Positions 9,084 through 42,800 of a DNA stretch of 64,000 nucleotides are shown piece by piece. Made by a program: the position numbers and the translations under genes. Within the stretch, counting starts at the first letter, position 1. Each line of letters starts with the position of its first letter. The DNA is taken from sequence record MK568540.2. One strand, written 5' to 3'. Under the pieces are notes generated by a model. That model was not told the origin of the DNA. It ran no database searches and saw nothing but the letters and a program-made list of their open reading frames with translations.

Positions 9084-10354
9084 TATTTCTTGCTCCCCGC
9101 AACTGCTACATTCATCGACGAATCACTTGATAATTCAAGCGTAGTAATGAATGAATTAGGCTCAACGCGATGCTTCAATTCATGAACAATCCATTTCCCT
9201 GACACATCAAGACTCGAATGGTTGTCACCAGTTACTGCGTGATAGTCAAGAAACACAACATCACCAACTGTAATGTTCGTATTACCTGGTATTTCTACAA
9301 GTATCTGTTTTGCATTCAAGTACGTTTCTTCCATTAATGAAACGCCATGAACAGACCCCAAAGGGTGTTTATTGTCATGCTCGTAAAAGCCGTCGTTTGA
9401 TATCAATTGAATGCTATTCAACGGTTGTTCGGTTACTGGAACTTCACTAGGAAATTCTGATTCGCTCGTGTACATATGAGCTTTGTCATTTAAAATCCCA
9501 ACCTTTTCAATATAATCACCACGACGAACATCTTTAGTCGTCAACTTTTTGCGAATTAAACTATGAGAATATGTTCTAGAACCGAATAAACCACTAGAAA
9601 TCTCATGCATATTAGACTGTTCTTTCACCACAACGCGCAATGCTGTGATTGTTTTACCGCGACCAGATGTCCATTTACCGTCACCTGTATCAGCACCTTT
9701 ACGAATTATATAATCGTAATCTTTGTTTCTGATCGTACCAAGAGACGTGAATTTAACCGAGTCCCGATCTTCGTAAAACATGAACTTACAACTGTTATTC
9801 ACGTCAGTACTTGCATGGTCTACAAGACTGCTGATGATGTCGTAAGGTTTACCGATCTGCGTCACGTAATCACGTTGATAAAGAGAAGATTCAATTTCAT
9901 ACACGGGCTTCTCATCACCCAAATTGTCTAAAATCGTTTTGATTATGTTCGATATACTAGTTTTCTTGAACACATACGGGCGTTTAACGTAATCATTCAA
10001 TGTCAATAGATTATTAGTAAAACGAACAATTATAGTTTCGAAACCACCAGTCGTTGACGGCATTCTTGATATGCCAGTAGCACGAAACGTTTTTCGATAT
10101 ACCTTATTTGCTTGCTCCCCGACATATGAAGCAAAATCAACATCGATAGCTTCAAACCCCGTCATTCGAACAGTGTCTACGATTCCGACTGAATCTGTGA
10201 ACATGAACATGCCCGAAACTAACCCGTCAAGCGACTCATAAATTTCCATGTGTGTGATTTCATTTTCAACAGCCGAGGCGAAATCAACACCACGAATGTG
10301 AATTTTGCTAACCACAAAGTTCTCAATTGGGTTAGCGGAGCGCATTTCAAACAT
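9083..10354 (-). CDS. Baseplate hub protein (gp27-like)
   Basis: 423 aa; hub-type motifs (IYESL, FMFYEDR, PGNTNITVGDVV, SGKWIV); adjacent to gp5. Confidence 0.6.
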   Translation of the reverse strand: MFEMRSANPIENFVVSKIHIRGVDFASAVENEITHMEIYESLDGLVSGMFMFTDSVGIVDTVRMTGFEAIDVDFASYVGEQANKVYRKTFRATGISRMPSTTGGFETIIVRFTNNLLTLNDYVKRPYVFKKTSISNIIKTILDNLGDEKPVYEIESSLYQRDYVTQIGKPYDIISSLVDHASTDVNNSCKFMFYEDRDSVKFTSLGTIRNKDYDYIIRKGADTGDGKWTSGRGKTITALRVVVKEQSNMHEISSGLFGSRTYSHSLIRKKLTTKDVRRGDYIEKVGILNDKAHMYTSESEFPSEVPVTEQPLNSIQLISNDGFYEHDNKHPLGSVHGVSLMEETYLNAKQILVEIPGNTNITVGDVVFLDYHAVTGDNHSSLDVSGKWIVHELKHRVEPNSFITTLELSSDSSMNVAVAGSKK

Positions 10355-17704: not shown

Positions 17705-18349
17705 ATGATTATAGGAATCAATGGACAAAAGCGTTCAGGGAAAGATACCCTTGCTGCTGCCATTAAAAAATCTCATAGTGATAGCACTTACATTTACAAA
17801 TTTGCCGACCCGATTAAAGAAGGGTTGTTCATTGGGTTAAAAGAATATGGCTATGATTATGCAGACATAGACGGTCAAACAGATTGTGACCGCGAAGTTC
17901 CAGTATTTACGTTAGACGAAGCAATTGAACTTGTATTGAAGTGCTGTGACTACGCAAACGTAGATGCTGATTATGATTACGTATACTTTACTCTACTTCC
18001 ACACACTGGTCTTTTTAGTATTCGAGATCTCTTACAAATGACAGGTACTGATGTTGCACGTTCTCTTAACGATCAGCATTGGATCAATTATGCACGTGAT
18101 AAATACAATCAGTTAGTGTTTAACAACCCCGACTTGCTCTTTATAATTACTGATGTTCGTTTTGAAAACGAAATGAATTTAGTATATGAGCTTGGTGGCA
18201 CGATGTTACAAGTTAACCGAGAAGGTTCTCTGGCATCTAATCACATTAGCGATACCGAATTGGGTTTTATTGAAGACGCTATTCAAATAGACAATAACGG
18301 TTCTCTTGAAGAACTGTATGAACAAATTGATAATTTAAATTTAAGGTGA
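17705..18349 (+). CDS. 1: Deoxynucleoside monophosphate kinase gp1
   Basis: IGINGQKRSGKDT P-loop; RDLLQMTGTDV; ITDVRFENE. Confidence 0.93.
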   Translation: MIIGINGQKRSGKDTLAAAIKKSHSDSTYIYKFADPIKEGLFIGLKEYGYDYADIDGQTDCDREVPVFTLDEAIELVLKCCDYANVDADYDYVYFTLLPHTGLFSIRDLLQMTGTDVARSLNDQHWINYARDKYNQLVFNNPDLLFIITDVRFENEMNLVYELGGTMLQVNREGSLASNHISDTELGFIEDAIQIDNNGSLEELYEQIDNLNLR

Positions 18350-18353
18350 AAAC

Positions 18354-18620
18354 ATGTCACAACAAACTGCTGAACAAGTAATCGAACAGAAAGACGCACA
18401 AATCAAAGATCTTAAAGTGCGTACCTTTGACCTACAAGAGACTCTTCAAGAAGAGCGCAATTCTTTTGGTCAGTTCGTGGGTGTACTAGCTCAACTACTC
18501 GATTTCGATCAGACGCAAGCAAGTTCTCTACAGAACTACGTTGACGAAATCGCAATTCTAACCGGTAAAGCTGAACGTCCTGCTGAAGGCGACGGCGAAC
18601 AAGAAAAAGACGCTGAATAA
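18354..18620 (+). CDS. 57A: Tail fibre chaperone gp57A
   Basis: Coiled coil with LKVRTFD motif; position after gene 1. Confidence 0.8.
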   Translation: MSQQTAEQVIEQKDAQIKDLKVRTFDLQETLQEERNSFGQFVGVLAQLLDFDQTQASSLQNYVDEIAILTGKAERPAEGDGEQEKDAE

Positions 18621-19075
18621 TGAAACTATCTAAGTTCCTTGAAAGTCAGGGAACTTACGTTGGTATCAGATTAGACGAGGCGAGTAAGCAAGAGTTAGTT
18701 CGATTGCAGAAAACGCTTCGTCTAAAAAATCCGTTAGAACCAGATAAATTTCACGTGACTGTGCTTTATAGTCGTAAGCAAATTGATGTACCTGTTGTCG
18801 ATACCACTTTCGTTGCTACTGTTGAACATATCGACTGTTGGAAAACGCAAGACGGCAAATATGCAGTTGTTGCTAAGATGGTATGTCCAGAACTTGTAGA
18901 ACGTCACGATGATCTTATCTCTATCGGTGGTACTCACGACTACCCTGACTATACCCCTCACGTTACGTTGTCTTATGACGACGCGATCACACCTATGCCC
19001 GTCAACGCTGAAGTTCGGCTTGTTGATGAATATCTTGAACCACTTGATTTAAATTGGGTTAATAGTAATGACTGA
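18620..19075 (+). CDS. 57B: gp57B / Acb1, 2H phosphodiesterase (anti-CBASS)
   Basis: Two HxT motifs (HVTV, HVTL); WKTQDG, THDYPDYTPH and EYLEPLDLNW are shared with T4 57B. Confidence 0.9.
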   Translation: MKLSKFLESQGTYVGIRLDEASKQELVRLQKTLRLKNPLEPDKFHVTVLYSRKQIDVPVVDTTFVATVEHIDCWKTQDGKYAVVAKMVCPELVERHDDLISIGGTHDYPDYTPHVTLSYDDAITPMPVNAEVRLVDEYLEPLDLNWVNSND

Positions 19076-19322
19076 TTTATCTACTGAAGCAGTATTAAAG
19101 AAGTACAATGAAGCTCCCGAAACTCTAACTACTGAAGAGAACGTTGTATTATTGACGTATATCATCGGTATGCAGACCGATCAGATTGCTTTACTTAAAG
19201 AGAACAACAAACTTTACGATAAAGCTATCACTGAGCTTCAGCAAGCTGTATCTCAGCTTCAAATCAAGCACGCTGCGCTTGAACGAGGTGAGACAGAAAG
19301 CGGTATCATTCTTTCAGTATAA
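19068..19322 (+). CDS. Hypothetical coiled-coil protein
   Basis: 84 aa ORF coupled to 57B. Confidence 0.7.
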   Translation: MTDLSTEAVLKKYNEAPETLTTEENVVLLTYIIGMQTDQIALLKENNKLYDKAITELQQAVSQLQIKHAALERGETESGIILSV

Positions 19323-19339
19323 AAACTTTCAAAAAGTTG

Positions 19340-19367
19340 TTGACTTATTCTGAAAAGCATGTAGAAT
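19340..19367 (+). promoter_or_regulatory. Early promoter
   Basis: AAAAAGTTG-TTGACT..TAGAAT. Confidence 0.7.
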
Positions 19368-19431
19368 GTATTTCATCGAGTCGAGAGACAGAACACAAAC
19401 TTTCAACTCGATGAAATATTTGAAAAAGTTG

Positions 19432-19459
19432 TTGACTTACACTGAAATGATGTTAAGAT
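19432..19459 (+). promoter_or_regulatory. Early promoter driving the RNA island
   Basis: AAAAAGTTG-TTGACT..TG-T-TAAGAT. Confidence 0.7.
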
Positions 19460-19467
19460 TAACACAG

Positions 19468-19576
19468 TTGATTAAGCGAGCTAAGTTCATCGTTCTCGCC
19501 TCTTATTGAAGATGAACAATATTGATTAAGCAGACTAAACTCATCGTTTCTGCCTCTTCTCTGAAGATGAGTAATA
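19468..19576 (+). repeat. Two tandem 54/55-nt repeats, each an H-type pseudoknot
   Basis: Copy 1: GCGAG/CTCGC plus GTTCATC/GATGAAC. Copy 2: GCAGA/TCTGC plus ACTCATC/GATGAGT. Both stems show compensatory changes. Confidence 0.85.
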
Positions 19577-19721
19577 TTTTAAATGTGCGTTAGCCGCAAT
19601 GAATACATGGAGCCAGTATACGTTCTGGCGTGCAGGGATACTCTTAGCGGACGAATTCTCAATCAAAAACTAGCTGAGTTAAAATTCGCTCAGTCGGCGT
19701 GCAAGTAGCGCACATTTAAAA
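19577..19721 (+). ncRNA. Orphan structured RNA
   Basis: 13-bp terminal stem TTTTAAATGTGCG/CGCACATTTAAAA with inner stems GCCG/CGGC and GCCAG/CTGGC. Confidence 0.55.
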
Positions 19722-19739
19722 TATCGAGAGTACATTGGT

Positions 19740-19862
19740 CGAGTGTTGGTGTAGTGGCAGCACACGTAGCATACTGTAATCAGACATGATTATATTCAGC
19801 AACCAATTTACGCATATCATAGGGAGATCGTGGGAACGGTTCGATTCCGTTACACTCGACCA
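19740..19862 (+). ncRNA. tRNA-like RNA E1 with CAGCAA module inserted in the anticodon stem (loop ATAGGGA)
   Basis: Acceptor CGAGTGT/ACACTCG, D-arm, T-arm AACGG-TTCGATT-CCGTT, ACCA end; 49-nt insert after position 28; 21-bp leader/trailer duplex 19726-19872. Confidence 0.8.
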
Positions 19863-20121
19863 ATGTACTCTCACTAACAAAGCGAGGTGGACAATTTGAT
19901 TGTATATCTTCTCGCACTAGTATTCATCGTCCTTTTTGCCTTGGACATTGAAGAAGAAAAGGTGCGCATTCATACTTTTGCGCTAATCACATGCGAACGG
20001 GTCATTCATCCCGTAATTAAAGCGCACGATTCCAGATTGTGTTTTGATTAGCTAAGGCAAATATAACTAGAGGATTTTTGGTGCTTGTGGTTAATCACAA
20101 GCACTCTCAAGAACATATTGA

Positions 20122-20243
20122 GCAGGGTTGGTGTAGTGGCTAGCACACGTAGCATAAACGCAAGCTGTTAAGTTTGTATTCTGCAATCAATTTAGCATAT
20201 CATTTCCAAGATCGTGACGCAGGTTCGAATCCTGCACCCTGCT
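20122..20243 (+). ncRNA. tRNA-like RNA E2 with CTGCAA module (loop ATTTCCAA)
   Basis: Cloverleaf with insert after position 28; 17-bp extended acceptor duplex 20112-20252; no encoded CCA. Confidence 0.8.
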
Positions 20244-20260
20244 CAATATGTTTTTACATT

Positions 20261-20373
20261 GGTGAAGTTAGTTCAGTAGGTTAGAACGCCGGCCAAAAAA
20301 CGAAGTCTGATAAGATTTCATTCTGCATTCACATGCACGCCGGAGGTCGCAGGTTCGAGTCCTGCACTTCACC
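20261..20373 (+). ncRNA. tRNA-like RNA E3 with CTGCAT module in the anticodon loop
   Basis: GGTGAAGT/ACTTCACC acceptor, CCGGC/GCCGG anticodon stem, canonical T-arm. Confidence 0.8.
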
Positions 20374-20383
20374 TTCAAATTCT

Positions 20384-20508
20384 GGAGAGTTAGCTCAGTC
20401 TGGTAGAGCAAAAGAATGTTAAAGAATACTGACAAGCATTCATGCTGCAAACCTTAATAACTAGGTAAATCTTTTTGTCACGTGGTTCAAATCCCGTACT
20501 CTCCACCA
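20384..20508 (+). ncRNA. tRNA-like RNA E4 with CTGCAA module in the anticodon loop
   Basis: GGAGAGT/ACTCTCC-A-CCA, GCTC/GAGC D-stem, AAAGA/TCTTT anticodon stem. Confidence 0.8.
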
Positions 20509-21284: not shown

Positions 21285-21524
21285 GCCGCTAACTGGCGTA
21301 CAATACACAGTGTATTCCCAACATTAGTGCAGACGTAGGCTCGCAACCTACGTTGGTACCGAATCACTGGGACCGAGTAGAAAGTGCATGTGAGATGTCG
21401 AAGTCTTGTATGTAGAAATAACGCTCGGCTGCTCTGAAATGCTGATTAGCTCTTACTTCGAAACTCTAATTGGGTGGAAGAGGTGTTGTGTTTGACGTGT
21501 GTTCGATTCACACGAGCGGCGCCA
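21285..21524 (+). ncRNA. tmRNA-shaped RNA (tRNA-like ends, ~190-nt internal domain)
   Basis: GCCGCT/AGCGGC-G-CCA acceptor; T-arm CGTGTG-TTCGATT-CACACG; long H2-like helix (ACAATAC/GTGTTGT, TTCC/GGAA, ATTAG/CTAAT). Confidence 0.65.
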
Positions 21525-21537
21525 AGAGGAAATTATA

Positions 21538-22059
21538 ATGAAACCATTGAAGTTCGTTGAGGCGTTCTCTAAAGAAGAACGTGCTGCTATGACGATTGAA
21601 GAACGTAGCAGACTTCGTAAAATATATAACGAACGCTATCAAGAGTATGTTGATAAGTACATCAATGTATTCACTCGAAAAGACTTTCGAAGAGAGCGTT
21701 GCTGGGTTATTCTTGCACGATGTAAAAAGACTGGTGAAATCATCGGTCGAATTGAAAATAGTTTTAGTATGGGATGGTCTAAAGAGCGTGTTCGTGTTAT
21801 TCGACCGTATCTAAACGGTAATTTCACGGGCGATGACCGCTTCTCTAAAGCTGAGTACAACAAAGCGTGTGCTGAGTACATAACTCATCATGAGAAACAA
21901 GTAAAGTCTCTCAGAGAAGCTTACAAAGACACTCACGACGTTTTCTTATCTCGTGTGGGTAGTAAGAACTGTCCTGTTTCTATTGATTGGGATACGTATT
22001 ACAGTAAAAAAGACAAACGAAACTTTGAATATCGAAATTTGAAATTCAAAGTTAAATAA
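21538..22059 (+). CDS. Hypothetical basic protein
   Basis: ATG 21538 after SD GAGGA. Confidence 0.7.
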   Translation: MKPLKFVEAFSKEERAAMTIEERSRLRKIYNERYQEYVDKYINVFTRKDFRRERCWVILARCKKTGEIIGRIENSFSMGWSKERVRVIRPYLNGNFTGDDRFSKAEYNKACAEYITHHEKQVKSLREAYKDTHDVFLSRVGSKNCPVSIDWDTYYSKKDKRNFEYRNLKFKVK

Positions 22060-22064
22060 TTCAT

Positions 22065-22180
22065 AGTCGGGTAGCTCAGTGGTAGAGCACGAAGAATGAT
22101 ACTGACAAGTATCGCTCCAGCACTCCTTCAATTGCCTGTTAAGCACGTGGTCGCTGGTTCGAATCCAGCCCCGACTACCA
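22065..22180 (+). ncRNA. tRNA-Asn(GTT)-like RNA E5 with a 41-nt CAGCAC module inserted between positions 28 and 29
   Basis: Removing the insert restores CGTGC-CTGTTAA-GCACG; acceptor AGTCGGG/CCCGACT-A-CCA. Confidence 0.85.
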
Positions 22181-39874: not shown

Positions 39875-42800
39875 ATGGCAGAACTAAGATCAACTACCGC
39901 AATTGGTGGTAACATAGTTTGGCACGGAGGGAATCTTCGCTTTGACCCGCAAGGCGAGACAATTCGCTACCAAGGCCACAAAATTTATACAGAACATGAT
40001 ACACCACTACCAGGCGAATTAGGTAACGGTGGGACGACTTCTGCATTCACGAAAGCTGAATCTGATGGTCGTTTTGCTCCGATTGTTGCTGGCGGCTACG
40101 TGAAGAAAACCGGCGATACAATGTCAGGTAAATTGACAAACACGGCAAACGAAATTGAGATCAACGGGGCATCGCCACGTCTGTTGTTGCGCGACAACGA
40201 CAACTCGAAAAACTGGTACATTATGAACTCGACTGATAGTTTCAGTATTCGAGAAAATGATGTAGTCACTACTCGCTTCAGAATTGATGCTACTGCTGCC
40301 GACTTTTCTGTTGATAGTATTGATATCAACATGAAAACAGCATTGCGTGGGTTTGATGATTGGTTGAGAATCAATGATCAGAATGAGTTTACGTCTGGGG
40401 TTTATTACGGAAGCTCTCTATTACGTACAGACGGAACGTTGCAAATCGGCAACAATGGTTCAACTCTGAGTGTAAACGGCTCTGCGTTCACGTATGAAGG
40501 TAATAACGTCTTCACTGAAGCATATCACCCAAATGCGGACAAATGGACATCTGCACGCACTCTTACAACGACTCTAACGGGCGATGTAAGCGGTTCTGCG
40601 TCTATGACTATTGATGGATCGGCTAATGCGACCGTGACTGTTACAGCGACTGTAGCGAACGATTCACACACACATGACGGTAGGTACTACACTGAAGCTG
40701 AATCTGATGCGAGATTTGCAAATGTTACAGGTGATACATTTACTGGAAACGTTGCGATCAGCAAAGCAGGTGCGCGTTTAAGCTTCAACGAGACTCTATA
40801 TGCAACCGAAAACTCAGGTATTAACTGGATTACGGGTGCGAATCAGAATCTGGAATTGATTCATGAGATTAGTGATGTTGACATCAACACTGATGGTGGT
40901 AACGGTCAAGCATTGATCATTCGTGAGAATGGTTCAACTGCATCGGTCGCAGGACTTGAAGTACAAGGTGAGATCTTCGCGAAAGTAAACCAACGTGTAT
41001 TCCACGATGCTTATCACCCAAATGCTGATAGGTGGACATCTGCACGCACTCTTACAACGACTCTAACGGGCGATGTAAGCGGTTCTGCGTCTATGACTAT
41101 TGATGGATCGGCTAATGCGACCGTGACTGTTACAGCGACTGTAGCGAACGATTCACACACACATGACGGTAGGTACTACACTGAAGCTGAATCTGATGCG
41201 AGATTTGCAAATGTTACAGGTGATACATTTACTGGAAACGTTGCGATCAGCAAAGCAGGTGCGCGTTTAAGCTTCAACGAGACTCTATATGCAACCGAAA
41301 ACTCAGGTATTAACTGGATTACGGGTGCGAATCAGAATCTGGAATTGATTCATGAGATTAGTGATGTTGACATCAACACTGATGGTGGTAACGGTCAAGC
41401 ATTGATCATTCGTGAGAATGGTTCAACTGCATCGGTCGCAGGACTTGAAGTACAAGGTGAGATCTTCGCGAAAGTAAACCAACGTGTATTCCACGATGCT
41501 TATCACCCAAATGCTGATAGGTGGACTACTGCTCGTACAATCACACTAGGTGGTGATCTAACAGGTTCAGTATCTATCGATGGTACTTCAAACGTTACGT
41601 TGAATGCATCTGTTCCGTCACTATCAAACTACCCGACATTTGCTGAAGTTGGTATACGCGCAGATCAGCCGAATTACTTAGCAACTGGTCGAACGATGGC
41701 AGGTGTTGATACTACAGTTGATTGGGATACGCTAACACAAGGTGGTTTCTACTACAAGTTATCACAAGGTACAAATAGACCAAGCGGATTTACTGGCTAC
41801 TGGTATGTTCAGAACATGACATATGGTTCAACTTCGAATACTACTCAAGTTGCATACCCTTACGGTCTAGCTGGAAATGTTGGTACAATGGCGATGCGTA
41901 CTCGTTATAGTGAAGTATGGGAAGACTGGGTGTACATGTACCACACAGATTATCACCCATATGCAGACAAATGGACAACTGCACGTTCACTATCACTAGG
42001 TGGTGAGTTAAGCGGTTCAGTATCTATCGATGGTAGTTCAAACGTTACGCTAGATGCCTCAGTTGATTTCATCACGAACGTGTTGAATATCAATCGCGTT
42101 GGCGAATCAAACCCGTCGATTTGGTTTAACAACGACACGGGTGAAACTCGCGGTAACATCTACTGGAATCGAGTTGATGATTCATTGCAGTTTCGTTTGA
42201 ATGCCTCTGATGGAACTACTGCTGAAAACATAATGTCAATGTACTCAGACCGTACAGTGTTTACAGATGCAGTTCATACAAGCGCGCTGTTGAATGATGC
42301 AAACACAGAACAAGGTTTGTTGATGTATAGCGGTGGTACGACTCGACTAGGTGGCGGCGGCGCGGGGGCAATTTACTTATGCCCGCAGGGTGTTAATTAT
42401 AATGCATCAAGTAATTTCGCAGCATCGCTTAACACGTTCGGGGTGATGTCATTGAATTCATCATCTTCAACCCCACTTTCTGTACATCGAGTTGAGGAGT
42501 CTTCAGTACCTAACGTTAATATTCGATTCCAAGGAAAGAGTACTAACGGAAATGCACTAGGTGAATCGTGGTATGCAGGTTCGTTCACGAACGGTGCAGG
42601 GTTTGGTATTGGTACAAATGCAGACTTATCCACAGCATCAAATCGATTGTTCGAAGTTGGTGGTGCAGGTGCAGTTGTGCGTCGAGAAGGAACTGGTGCT
42701 ACGAGTCTTACTATTCAAGGTACTGACCCGTTCTTGTTGTTTGATCAAACAGATATTGGTAAATCTGGTTATATCGGAATGGACGGTTCGGGTGTTGATT

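Follow-up and report, generated by a model that had tools for sequence, protein, structure and literature searches.

Tandem H-type pseudoknots with constant loops and covarying stems in Vibrio phage Va3 and other KVP40-like phages

Two tandem copies of an RNA module that folds as an H-type pseudoknot are encoded at positions 19468-19576 of the DNA analysed here, a stretch of 64,000 nucleotides (nt; 64 kilobases, kb) from record MK568540.2 that is called the window below. The region 19300-19900 of the window matches Vibrio phage Va3 (MK568540.2; Straboviridae, Schizotequatrovirus), a KVP40-like relative of T4, with 100% identity and displays 79-99% identity with about 50 KVP40-like vibriophages. 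The comparison of the module between phages, and with a marine element, gives strong support to a real and hitherto undescribed RNA family. Its architecture resembles that of the type III antitoxins, but the module is an orphan, is built differently and is located in a phage tRNA island, and the function that we put forward is a proposal: with a probability of about one in three, it would be a stable small RNA, released by processing, which would sequester a conserved protein or modulate it.

The repeat was detected by Tandem Repeats Finder at 19468-19578, with a period of 54, 2.0 copies and 83% matches. Unit 1 (54 nt, 19468..19521, + strand) and unit 2 (55 nt, 19522..19576, + strand) obtained 64.6 and 83.5 bits, respectively, with a covariance model. 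Both are arranged in the order TTGATTAA / P1a (5) / CTAA / P2a (7) / GTT / P1b (5) / CTCTT-N2-3-TGAA / P2b (7) / AATA. The strand order P1a-P2a-P1b-P2b is that of an H-type pseudoknot with a P1 of 5 base pairs (bp) and a P2 of 7 bp, and the tails are TTGATTAA and AATA(TT). In unit 1, the 5' tail (19468-19475) is followed by P1a (19476-19480), the loop L1 (19481-19484), P2a (19485-19491), L2 (19492-19494), P1b (19495-19499), L3 (19500-19510), P2b (19511-19517) and the linker to the second copy (19518-19521). The corresponding parts of unit 2 are the 5' tail (19522-19529), P1a (19530-19534), L1 (19535-19538), P2a (19539-19545), L2 (19546-19548), P1b (19549-19553), L3 (19554-19565), P2b (19566-19572) and the 3' tail (19573-19576). 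P1 is GCGAG/CTCGC in unit 1 and GCAGA/TCTGC in unit 2, and P2 is GTTCATC/GATGAAC and ACTCATC/GATGAGT, respectively, exactly as quoted in an initial annotation of this DNA, which had described two 54/55-nt repeats forming pseudoknots with covarying stems. Folded singly, the helices P1 and P2 have energies of -4.9 and -7.7 kcal/mol in unit 1 and of -4.3 and -7.9 kcal/mol in unit 2. The pattern of the unit occurs twice in the window where 0.00 occurrences are expected, and the covariance model recovered no further, diverged copy in these 64 kb.

The fold is supported by an alignment of 17 distinct units from 11 phages, among them Va3, KVP40, V05, VH1_2019, VS1, nt-1, F86, D480, D482 and 1.081.O, and from a marine contig. 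Standard pairs are observed in 202 of 202 cells, all 12 pairs being always paired, and 7 of the 12 pairs display changes on both sides. The covariation score amounts to 0.554, compared with 0.231 +/- 0.024 in shuffled alignments, none of the 500 shuffles being as high, and the pairing falls to 24-56% when the 3' partners are slid by 1-3 columns. Between the two units of Va3, 10 of the 24 stem positions differ, corresponding to five compensated pairs (three in P1 and two in P2), while 28 of the 31 loop and tail positions are identical; the conservation of loops and linkers claimed in the initial annotation is thus confirmed, together with the covariation. In the relatives, too, the loops and tails GATTAA, CTAR, GTT, CTCTT and TGAA are invariant or nearly so while the stems vary. 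Copy 1 of nt-1/F86/D480 has a G:C pair replaced by A:U in P1, copy 2 of the KVP40 group shows the same replacement at the first P1 pair, two P2 pairs are changed in copy 2 of F86/D480, the unit of 1.081.O contains one G:U, and the marine unit has a new C:G pair in P1 and new A:U/U:A pairs in P2. From their distribution, these compensatory changes appear to have arisen several times independently, not as one inherited event. Since the loops are constant and the stems covary, the module would be held in a precise tertiary fold or be read by a partner, which does not suit a hairpin serving stability alone; this combination indicates, as judged from the alignment, a precise tertiary fold recognised by something.

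The evidence for the fold is comparative and not thermodynamic, because ViennaRNA cannot form pseudoknots; the nested minimum-free-energy fold is ordinary (z = -0.52). In the nested alternative, P2 is lengthened by three pairs that compete with P1. For the P1 pair that includes the contested base (alignment columns 15 and 31), the covariation favours P1.

The repeat was found by blastn in 50 phage records, every one of them a KVP40-type Vibrio phage, and the hosts include V. parahaemolyticus, V. alginolyticus, V. natriegens, V. harveyi, V. splendidus and V. crassostreae. KVP40-like phages typically carry two copies; in 1.081.O there is one, immediately before the next RNA element. In the group that is most distant, the repeat is better conserved than its surroundings (88% vs 79% identity). 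Public collections were scanned with patterns anchored on the invariant loops, followed by a filter for stem complementarity, and a clean separation was obtained between the true matches (12 of 12 pairs) and the chance matches (at most 8). In IMG/VR, only KVP40-type contigs were present among the matches listed. The 185,579 species-representative genomes yielded one true match, in a contig binned to a metagenome-assembled genome of Chloroflexota (L136), which is mis-binned or a phage-like marine contig. Two Tara-type contigs carrying the same element as L136 (L273 and L275) were detected in the JGI/ENA metagenomes. All other pattern matches beyond the KVP40-type phages and these three contigs were rejected as chance matches; among the rejected loci, L074/L082/L093 (with synonymous variation in L087) and L288-L296 are clearly coding. 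No similar sequence was found by blastn in plasmids or in E. coli genomes.

The marine unit is present as a single copy with the stems GCACA/TGTGC and GATTATC/GATAATC and with unchanged loops; it retains 25-26 of the 31 loop positions and 14-16 of the 24 stem positions. It is located 9 nt upstream of a tRNA-Asn with an encoded CCA, and the nearest promoter-like site lies ~165 nt upstream of it. No protein common to the 64-kb window and the marine loci was detected by tblastn with all the open reading frames (ORFs) of the window against 8-14 kb of this uncultured marine element, whose full contig (PBMB01000011.1) has 75 kb. A ~100-nt non-coding element with a T-arm-like hairpin is, on the other hand, common to the marine element and to phi-ST2, ValKK3 and other KVP40-type phages. 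As the unit and the tRNA-Asn are common to both lineages, and so is this ~100-nt element in some KVP40-type phages, the pseudoknot travels with cassettes of non-coding RNA. Within the marine element, a 457-amino-acid (aa) ORF has no match in sequenced phages, and most ORFs have no match in Pfam or PHROG. A tandem duplication of ~180 bp (91% identical; L275 10481-10660 and 10682-10860, present also in L136 and L273) comprises a promoter-like region and a leader, just upstream of the pseudoknot unit.

Searches against known RNA families were negative. At the gathering threshold, Rfam recognises only tRNAs in the window. At E <= 10, the best non-tRNA matches in 19330-19900 reach 10-23 bits against thresholds of 45-100, and the units match no riboswitch, ribozyme, CRISPR repeat, ToxI, tmRNA or small RNA family.

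In Va3 the units begin 1-2 nt after a predicted transcription start site; the initial annotation had placed their beginning at the predicted start. They are preceded by a promoter-like site of the sigma-70 type (TTGACT-16-TAAGAT, 19432..19459, + strand), recognised by its match to the consensus and possessing a TG upstream of the -10; since the -10 ends 8 nt before unit 1, the start is predicted at ~19466-19467. Both the -35 and the -10, as well as the nucleotides separating the -10 from unit 1, are unchanged in 11 of the 12 aligned phages. A further, early-type promoter-like site (TTGACT-16-TAGAAT, 19340..19367, + strand) is predicted upstream by a consensus scan (10/12) and is kept in relatives. 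It is accompanied by the 17-mer AAAAAGTTGTTGACTTA, which has copies at 19331, 19423 and 20982 (the last with 2 mismatches), all on the + strand, where 0.5 copies are expected; this motif is common to the promoter before the units and to two other co-oriented promoter-like sites of the region. A 50-nt hairpin recognised from the sequence is located between both promoters (19369..19418, + strand) and would be transcribed from the first of these predicted tandem promoters. It is kept in eight phages, with a compensated change from G:C to A:U in 1.081.O and a G:U in F86/D480, and the 5' half of its loop is invariant. Its arms TTCATCG / CGATGAA are in common with P2 of the pseudoknot units; the hairpin may be a degenerate third unit, and a kinship with the units is what this resemblance would point to.

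Downstream, the 3' tail of unit 2 runs directly into the closing helix of element A, a conserved structured RNA of ~150 nt (19574..19724, + strand; closing helix of ~19 bp) that was identified with RNAalifold from eight phages. Compensatory changes are observed in 23 of its 44 predicted pairs, and element A matches no Rfam family. The single-sequence fold of 19574-19885 has a z of -5.75. As the helix of element A starts 2 nt after P2b of unit 2, it is likely to be a site of double-strand processing. A pairing of the 5' tail with element A was set aside because the candidate partner is not conserved, and so was a short ORF starting from P2b, the start codon of which is missing in copy 2 of F86/D480 and in the marine unit. 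No terminator-like site was found in 19577-19900.

Element A is followed, in this order, by an extended tRNA-like RNA, two tRNA-like genes bearing insertions and the tRNA cluster. In the first of these (19726..19872, + strand, predicted by folding), the acceptor helix is lengthened to ~21 bp and the anticodon arm is replaced by a long insertion; this RNA has a paralogue at ~20100-20255, the two having the D-arm in common and a normal T-arm. One tRNA-like RNA is annotated as tRNA-OTHER (pseudo) in the phi-ST2 record. Rfam tRNA matches of 50-56 bits and 112-122 nt are located at 20262-20373, 20384-20505 and 22065-22177, and the first two contain insertions of 44 and 49 nt, respectively, in the anticodon loop. 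The same two genes are named tRNA-Pseudo-4/5 in KVP40 and tRNA-Cys/Asn in other records; they may be intron-containing tRNAs, decoys or pseudogenes. A weak match to YrlA (a Y-RNA-like family) at 20345-20409 corresponds only to a T-arm plus a D-arm. The cluster itself, located between 20893 and 27994 on the + strand, comprises 28 tRNA genes, and several Rfam tRNA matches with long insertions are also present in the window. A cassette swap was observed at 20258-20383, where Va3 has the tRNA-like gene with an insertion and the phages of the phi-ST2/ValKK3 type have the ~100-nt non-coding element (L013 1797-1903), which displays 82% identity with the marine contig L275 at ~9860-9965 (- strand). 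An apparent insertion of ~300 bp beside the repeats of phi-ST2-type phages was explained by paralogous matches, the true difference being this swap.

The succession of pseudoknots and tRNA-like RNA recalls tmRNA, which has consecutive H-type pseudoknots and a tRNA-like T-arm at a distance, but this likeness is one of topology only. Two collinear Rfam matches to tmRNA, in the units and in the downstream tRNA-like RNA, scored 10.3 and 8.2 bits against a gathering threshold of 47 and were discarded. ARAGORN detected no tmRNA, and there is no tag reading frame.

We favour the reading that the module, composed of a ~45-nt H-type pseudoknot core, a conserved 5' tail and an AU-rich 3' tail and borne in two copies by the phage, acts in trans. 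The units would be transcribed first, on an early transcript continuing into the structured RNAs, the tRNA-like genes and the 28-tRNA cluster, and the module would be cut from this precursor by the ordinary RNA-processing enzymes of the host. A long double-stranded helix is a typical substrate of RNase III-type enzymes. In Va3 the cuts would be located within the long closing helix of element A and the AU-rich linkers, and RNase P would cleave at the tRNA that follows the marine unit by 9 nt; the excision is plausible because the unit is flanked by a covarying ~19-bp helix in one case and lies 9 nt from the 5' end of a tRNA in the other. The released RNA would offer its single-stranded parts, the invariant loops and tails, to one conserved protein, in the manner of a type III antitoxin or of a protein sponge. 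A conserved partner is suggested by the constancy of the loops in ~50 phages from many species of Vibrio and also in a marine element unrelated to them; this partner might be a protein conserved across hosts, or a widespread protein of defence or RNA metabolism, rather than a strain-specific toxin. The module-like behaviour of the unit, whose copy number is two or one and which is present in an element without any protein common to the 64-kb window, is consistent with this reading. So is its setting in an island of non-coding RNAs adjoining acb1, a gene for an anti-CBASS (cyclic-oligonucleotide-based antiphage signalling system) enzyme; the whole looks like an RNA-rich island of takeover or anti-defence. 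By position, an analogy exists with the RNAC and RNAD of T4 (species 1 and 2), small non-coding RNAs co-transcribed with a tRNA cluster; the tRNA region of T4 encodes two stable small RNAs of unknown role (PMC3014915). This comparison is based on position and not on sequence; pseudoknot repeats have not been reported among the T4 RNAs.

Several observations weigh against a trans-acting RNA. The place of the units 1-2 nt after the predicted start is strictly kept in the KVP40 group, which suits a cis-acting leader at least equally. As bases of element A are predicted to pair with the 3' tail of unit 2, units 1-2 and element A could form one larger RNA and not separate products. No shared protein pointing to a partner was found in the comparison of the phage (64 kb) with the marine element (8-14 kb), and literature searches retrieved no description of this RNA.

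A cis-acting leader of the early non-coding-RNA/tRNA operon is also possible, and nearly as likely as the trans-acting RNA. The nascent pseudoknots would act on the machinery that transcribes or processes their own transcript, for example by rendering the RNA polymerase termination-resistant along more than 8 kb of RNA that is mostly untranslated, or by guiding the folding and processing of the tRNA-like RNAs. The put RNA of HK022 makes RNA polymerase termination-resistant, and the leader of the T4 gene 32 mRNA has at its 5' end an H-type pseudoknot that is a specific protein-binding site. The latter is, however, a single copy upstream of the gene that it regulates, whereas the present units are repeated and no downstream ORF is there to be regulated. 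In favour of such a leader, the operon that follows the units is long and nearly devoid of ORFs, and throughout the KVP40 group the units keep their place immediately behind a conserved promoter. Both lineages have the unit upstream of the first tRNA or tRNA-like gene and on the same strand, and fixed loops would suit a universal machine such as RNA polymerase, which would explain their conservation in an unrelated marine element. On the other hand, the marine unit has its nearest promoter-like site ~165 nt upstream and a tRNA 9 nt downstream, and proximity to the start site is therefore not a trait of the family. The BoxA consensus GYTCTTTAANA (PMC5725501; gammaproteobacterial) is missing from the + strand of 19330-19900 at <=1 mismatch, the overlap being limited to the 5-nt core CTCTT. 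Nor does a terminator-like site follow the units, and no known family of cis-antiterminator RNA was matched in Rfam. A purely protective role, as a 5' structure blocking exonucleases, had been named as the alternative in the initial annotation and is improbable: the model leaves ~9 nt unpaired before P1, and the marine unit is internal to its transcript. Moreover, no 5'-3' exoribonuclease is known in gammaproteobacteria.

The initial annotation had instead suggested an orphan type III antitoxin mimic, and this we consider unlikely, although part of the resemblance is real. Such an RNA would be made early and would keep a toxin of the TenpN/ToxN/CptN type inhibited after the decay of the host antitoxin. 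Type III antitoxins are defined by tandem repeats located between a promoter and a terminator, with a toxin gene downstream; the toxin cuts the array into pseudoknotted monomers, which bind it through their single-stranded tails (PMC5086642). The repeats are of 31-62 nt in 1.9-5.6 copies for toxIN, of 40-48 nt in 1.9-3.4 copies for cptIN and of 39-57 nt in 1.9-3.0 copies for tenpIN, and tenpIN loci are reported in Vibrionales and Alteromonadales (PMC3401426). The present units (54/55 nt, 2.0 copies) fall in the range of TenpI, which is a permissive criterion. They resemble TenpI most closely, with its ~2 tandem, sometimes non-identical repeats of ~50 nt that form H-type pseudoknots with single-stranded tails just downstream of a promoter (PMC3401426, PMC13682666, PMC12283969); a characterised tenpI has two non-identical repeats, each of them active (PMC13682666). 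The covariation places pseudoknots flanked by single-stranded tails here as well, an early-type promoter-like site precedes the 2.0 repeats, and acb1 is a neighbour. A phage precedent exists in the pseudo-ToxI of phiTE, a phage-encoded decoy for ToxN (PMC3475682, PMC5086642).

The resemblance to the type III antitoxins does not extend to membership, which is not supported by the tests that could be run. No toxin ORF follows, as the initial annotation had stated: the next ORFs (54, 122/138, 76 and 186 aa) match no toxin family in Pfam, PADLOC, NCBIfam, PHROGs or a sequence search of the PDB. A downstream endoribonuclease gene is by definition missing from an orphan mimic. No terminator-like site was detected after the array, which runs into element A, in a phage operon of tRNAs and non-coding RNAs, and single-unit variants exist. 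In TenpI and CptI the long loop contains a conserved stretch of adenosines, which makes A-minor contacts with stem 1, and stem 1 is conserved (PMC12283969, PMC13682666), whereas L3 of the present units (CTCTT-N2-3-TGAA) is pyrimidine-rich without an A run. Relative to TenpI, moreover, L1 has 4 nt and not ~1 nt, there is an L2 of 3 nt, P2 exceeds P1 in length, and no bacterial sequence relative is detectable. The loops of ToxI follow a similar scheme, with a medium first, a short middle and a long third loop (4 / 3 / 11-12 nt here against 3-4 / 1-2 / long), but its units have 34-36 nt, stems of 3-4 bp and triplexes. With stems of 5 + 7 bp, an L2 of 3 nt and a length of 54-55 nt, the units depart from the ToxI template (31-46-nt unit, 3-4-bp stems, loops of 3-4 / 1-2 / variable length; PMC3401426), and no Rfam match to ToxI was obtained at E <= 10; no type III family was matched in Rfam either by sequence or by structure. 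The cleavage motifs of ToxN(Pa), ToxN(Bt) and AbiQ (PMC5086642) do not occur in the linker between units 1 and 2. No look-alike of a host antitoxin was found by the loop-anchored scan of bacterial genomes (one genome per species, so that strain-specific loci could escape), in plasmids or in E. coli. In the Klebsiella plasmid NZ_CP056218.1, cited for tenpIN, the pseudoknot model scored at most 6.8 bits, a weak comparison as its tenpI was not located; Tandem Repeats Finder detected no repeats in it, and neither hypothetical protein is identifiable as TenpN. Type III antitoxins are reported to diverge faster than their toxins and not to cross-react (PMC5086642, PMC12283969), in contrast to the strong conservation of the present units across many hosts. 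The pseudo-ToxI of phiTE is recognisable by its similarity to the ToxI of the host (PMC5086642) and was selected in escape mutants, while the units described here are fixed in wild-type phages and have no host look-alike. That the units would serve as decoys of a bacterial suicide toxin is a proposal with weak support. The further suggestion that the two variants cover two toxins does not agree with the alignment: the copies differ almost only by compensated changes in the stems and are the same in the exposed loops and tails that would contact a toxin, which argues against two specificities, and both 1.081.O and the marine element manage with one unit.

The other explanations are less probable. 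A tandem-duplicated aptamer for a small molecule, acting like a riboswitch or as an RNA sponge for a metabolite or signalling nucleotide, is very doubtful, even though an H-type pseudoknot of ~50 nt with fixed loops and covarying stems has an adequate form. Compact pseudoknot aptamers typically have such a size and topology, and tandem aptamers are known; the neighbouring acb1 would also fit, since its product degrades cyclic-nucleotide signals. No riboswitch family was matched even at E <= 10, however, and there is neither an expression platform nor a protein-coding gene under control: nothing like a terminator comes after the units, and the marine tRNA starts 9 nt later. That the repeat is not an RNA at all, but a small ORF, a DNA-level repeat bound by a protein or a chance repeat, is hardly tenable. 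Short ORFs are annotated across the region (KVP40.0320 on the opposite strand; QD01_351-353), and a 47-aa ORF exists mechanically at 19366-19509. These annotations differ in strand and frame, and the single-base insertions and deletions that relatives show in L1, L3 and P1b would break any frame and rule out a conserved one. Compensated pairs in two interleaved helices would not be expected in codons, nor in a DNA site whose bases are read one by one, and, as indicated above, 0.00 matches to the pattern are expected by chance.

Upstream of the units, the window encodes the gene 1 dNMP (deoxynucleoside monophosphate) kinase (17705-18349), a 57A-like tail-fibre chaperone (18354-18620) and Acb1, the homologue of T4 57B (18620..19075, + strand), an anti-CBASS 2H phosphodiesterase recognised by Pfam PF23474 Acb1 (E = 9.3e-46, 155.6 bits). 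The acb1 homologue is labelled gp57B in the KVP40 and nt-1 records, and at this position most KVP40-type records indicate "hypothetical protein" or "RNA ligase". Between acb1 and the promoters lies an 84-aa ORF (19068-19322) of unknown function. From gene 57B (acb1) to the tRNA cluster, the records show nothing or doubtful small ORFs. Inside the tRNA/non-coding-RNA region, a strongly basic protein of 186 aa (PHROG 15953) is encoded at 21499-22059. It is conceivable that this protein is an RNA-binding partner; no homologue of it was found in the marine loci. Elsewhere, the strongest repeat of the window is a 489-bp tandem (40523-41526, 2.1 copies, 99% identical), probably within a large structural gene.

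KVP40-like phages are standard models of marine vibriophages and candidates for phage therapy in aquaculture. Their region from 57B to the tRNA cluster codes for at least one, and probably several, RNA families, with a covariation that is unusually clean. Whatever its mode of action, the module is a compact RNA of ~45 nt with invariant loops, suited to structure determination. A more far-reaching interpretation, which we regard as rather unlikely, is that of a mobile family of phage RNA decoys, a fixed "orphan antitoxin" moving with tRNA/non-coding-RNA cassettes among unrelated marine phages and neutralising a defence nuclease that binds RNA and is widespread, whether a toxin of the type III kind or a nuclease targeting tRNA. 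If this were true, the tRNA island of KVP40-like phages would be an RNA-based anti-defence island beside acb1. If the module is a cis-acting leader, it would represent a new type of element governing the transcription or processing of a long untranslated phage operon. If it is a decoy for a protein, it would represent the first RNA-based counter-measure to be fixed in wild-type phages of the T4 type, the sole proven case coming from laboratory escape mutants, and it would give a function to the long-unexplained small stable RNAs that are co-transcribed with phage tRNAs.

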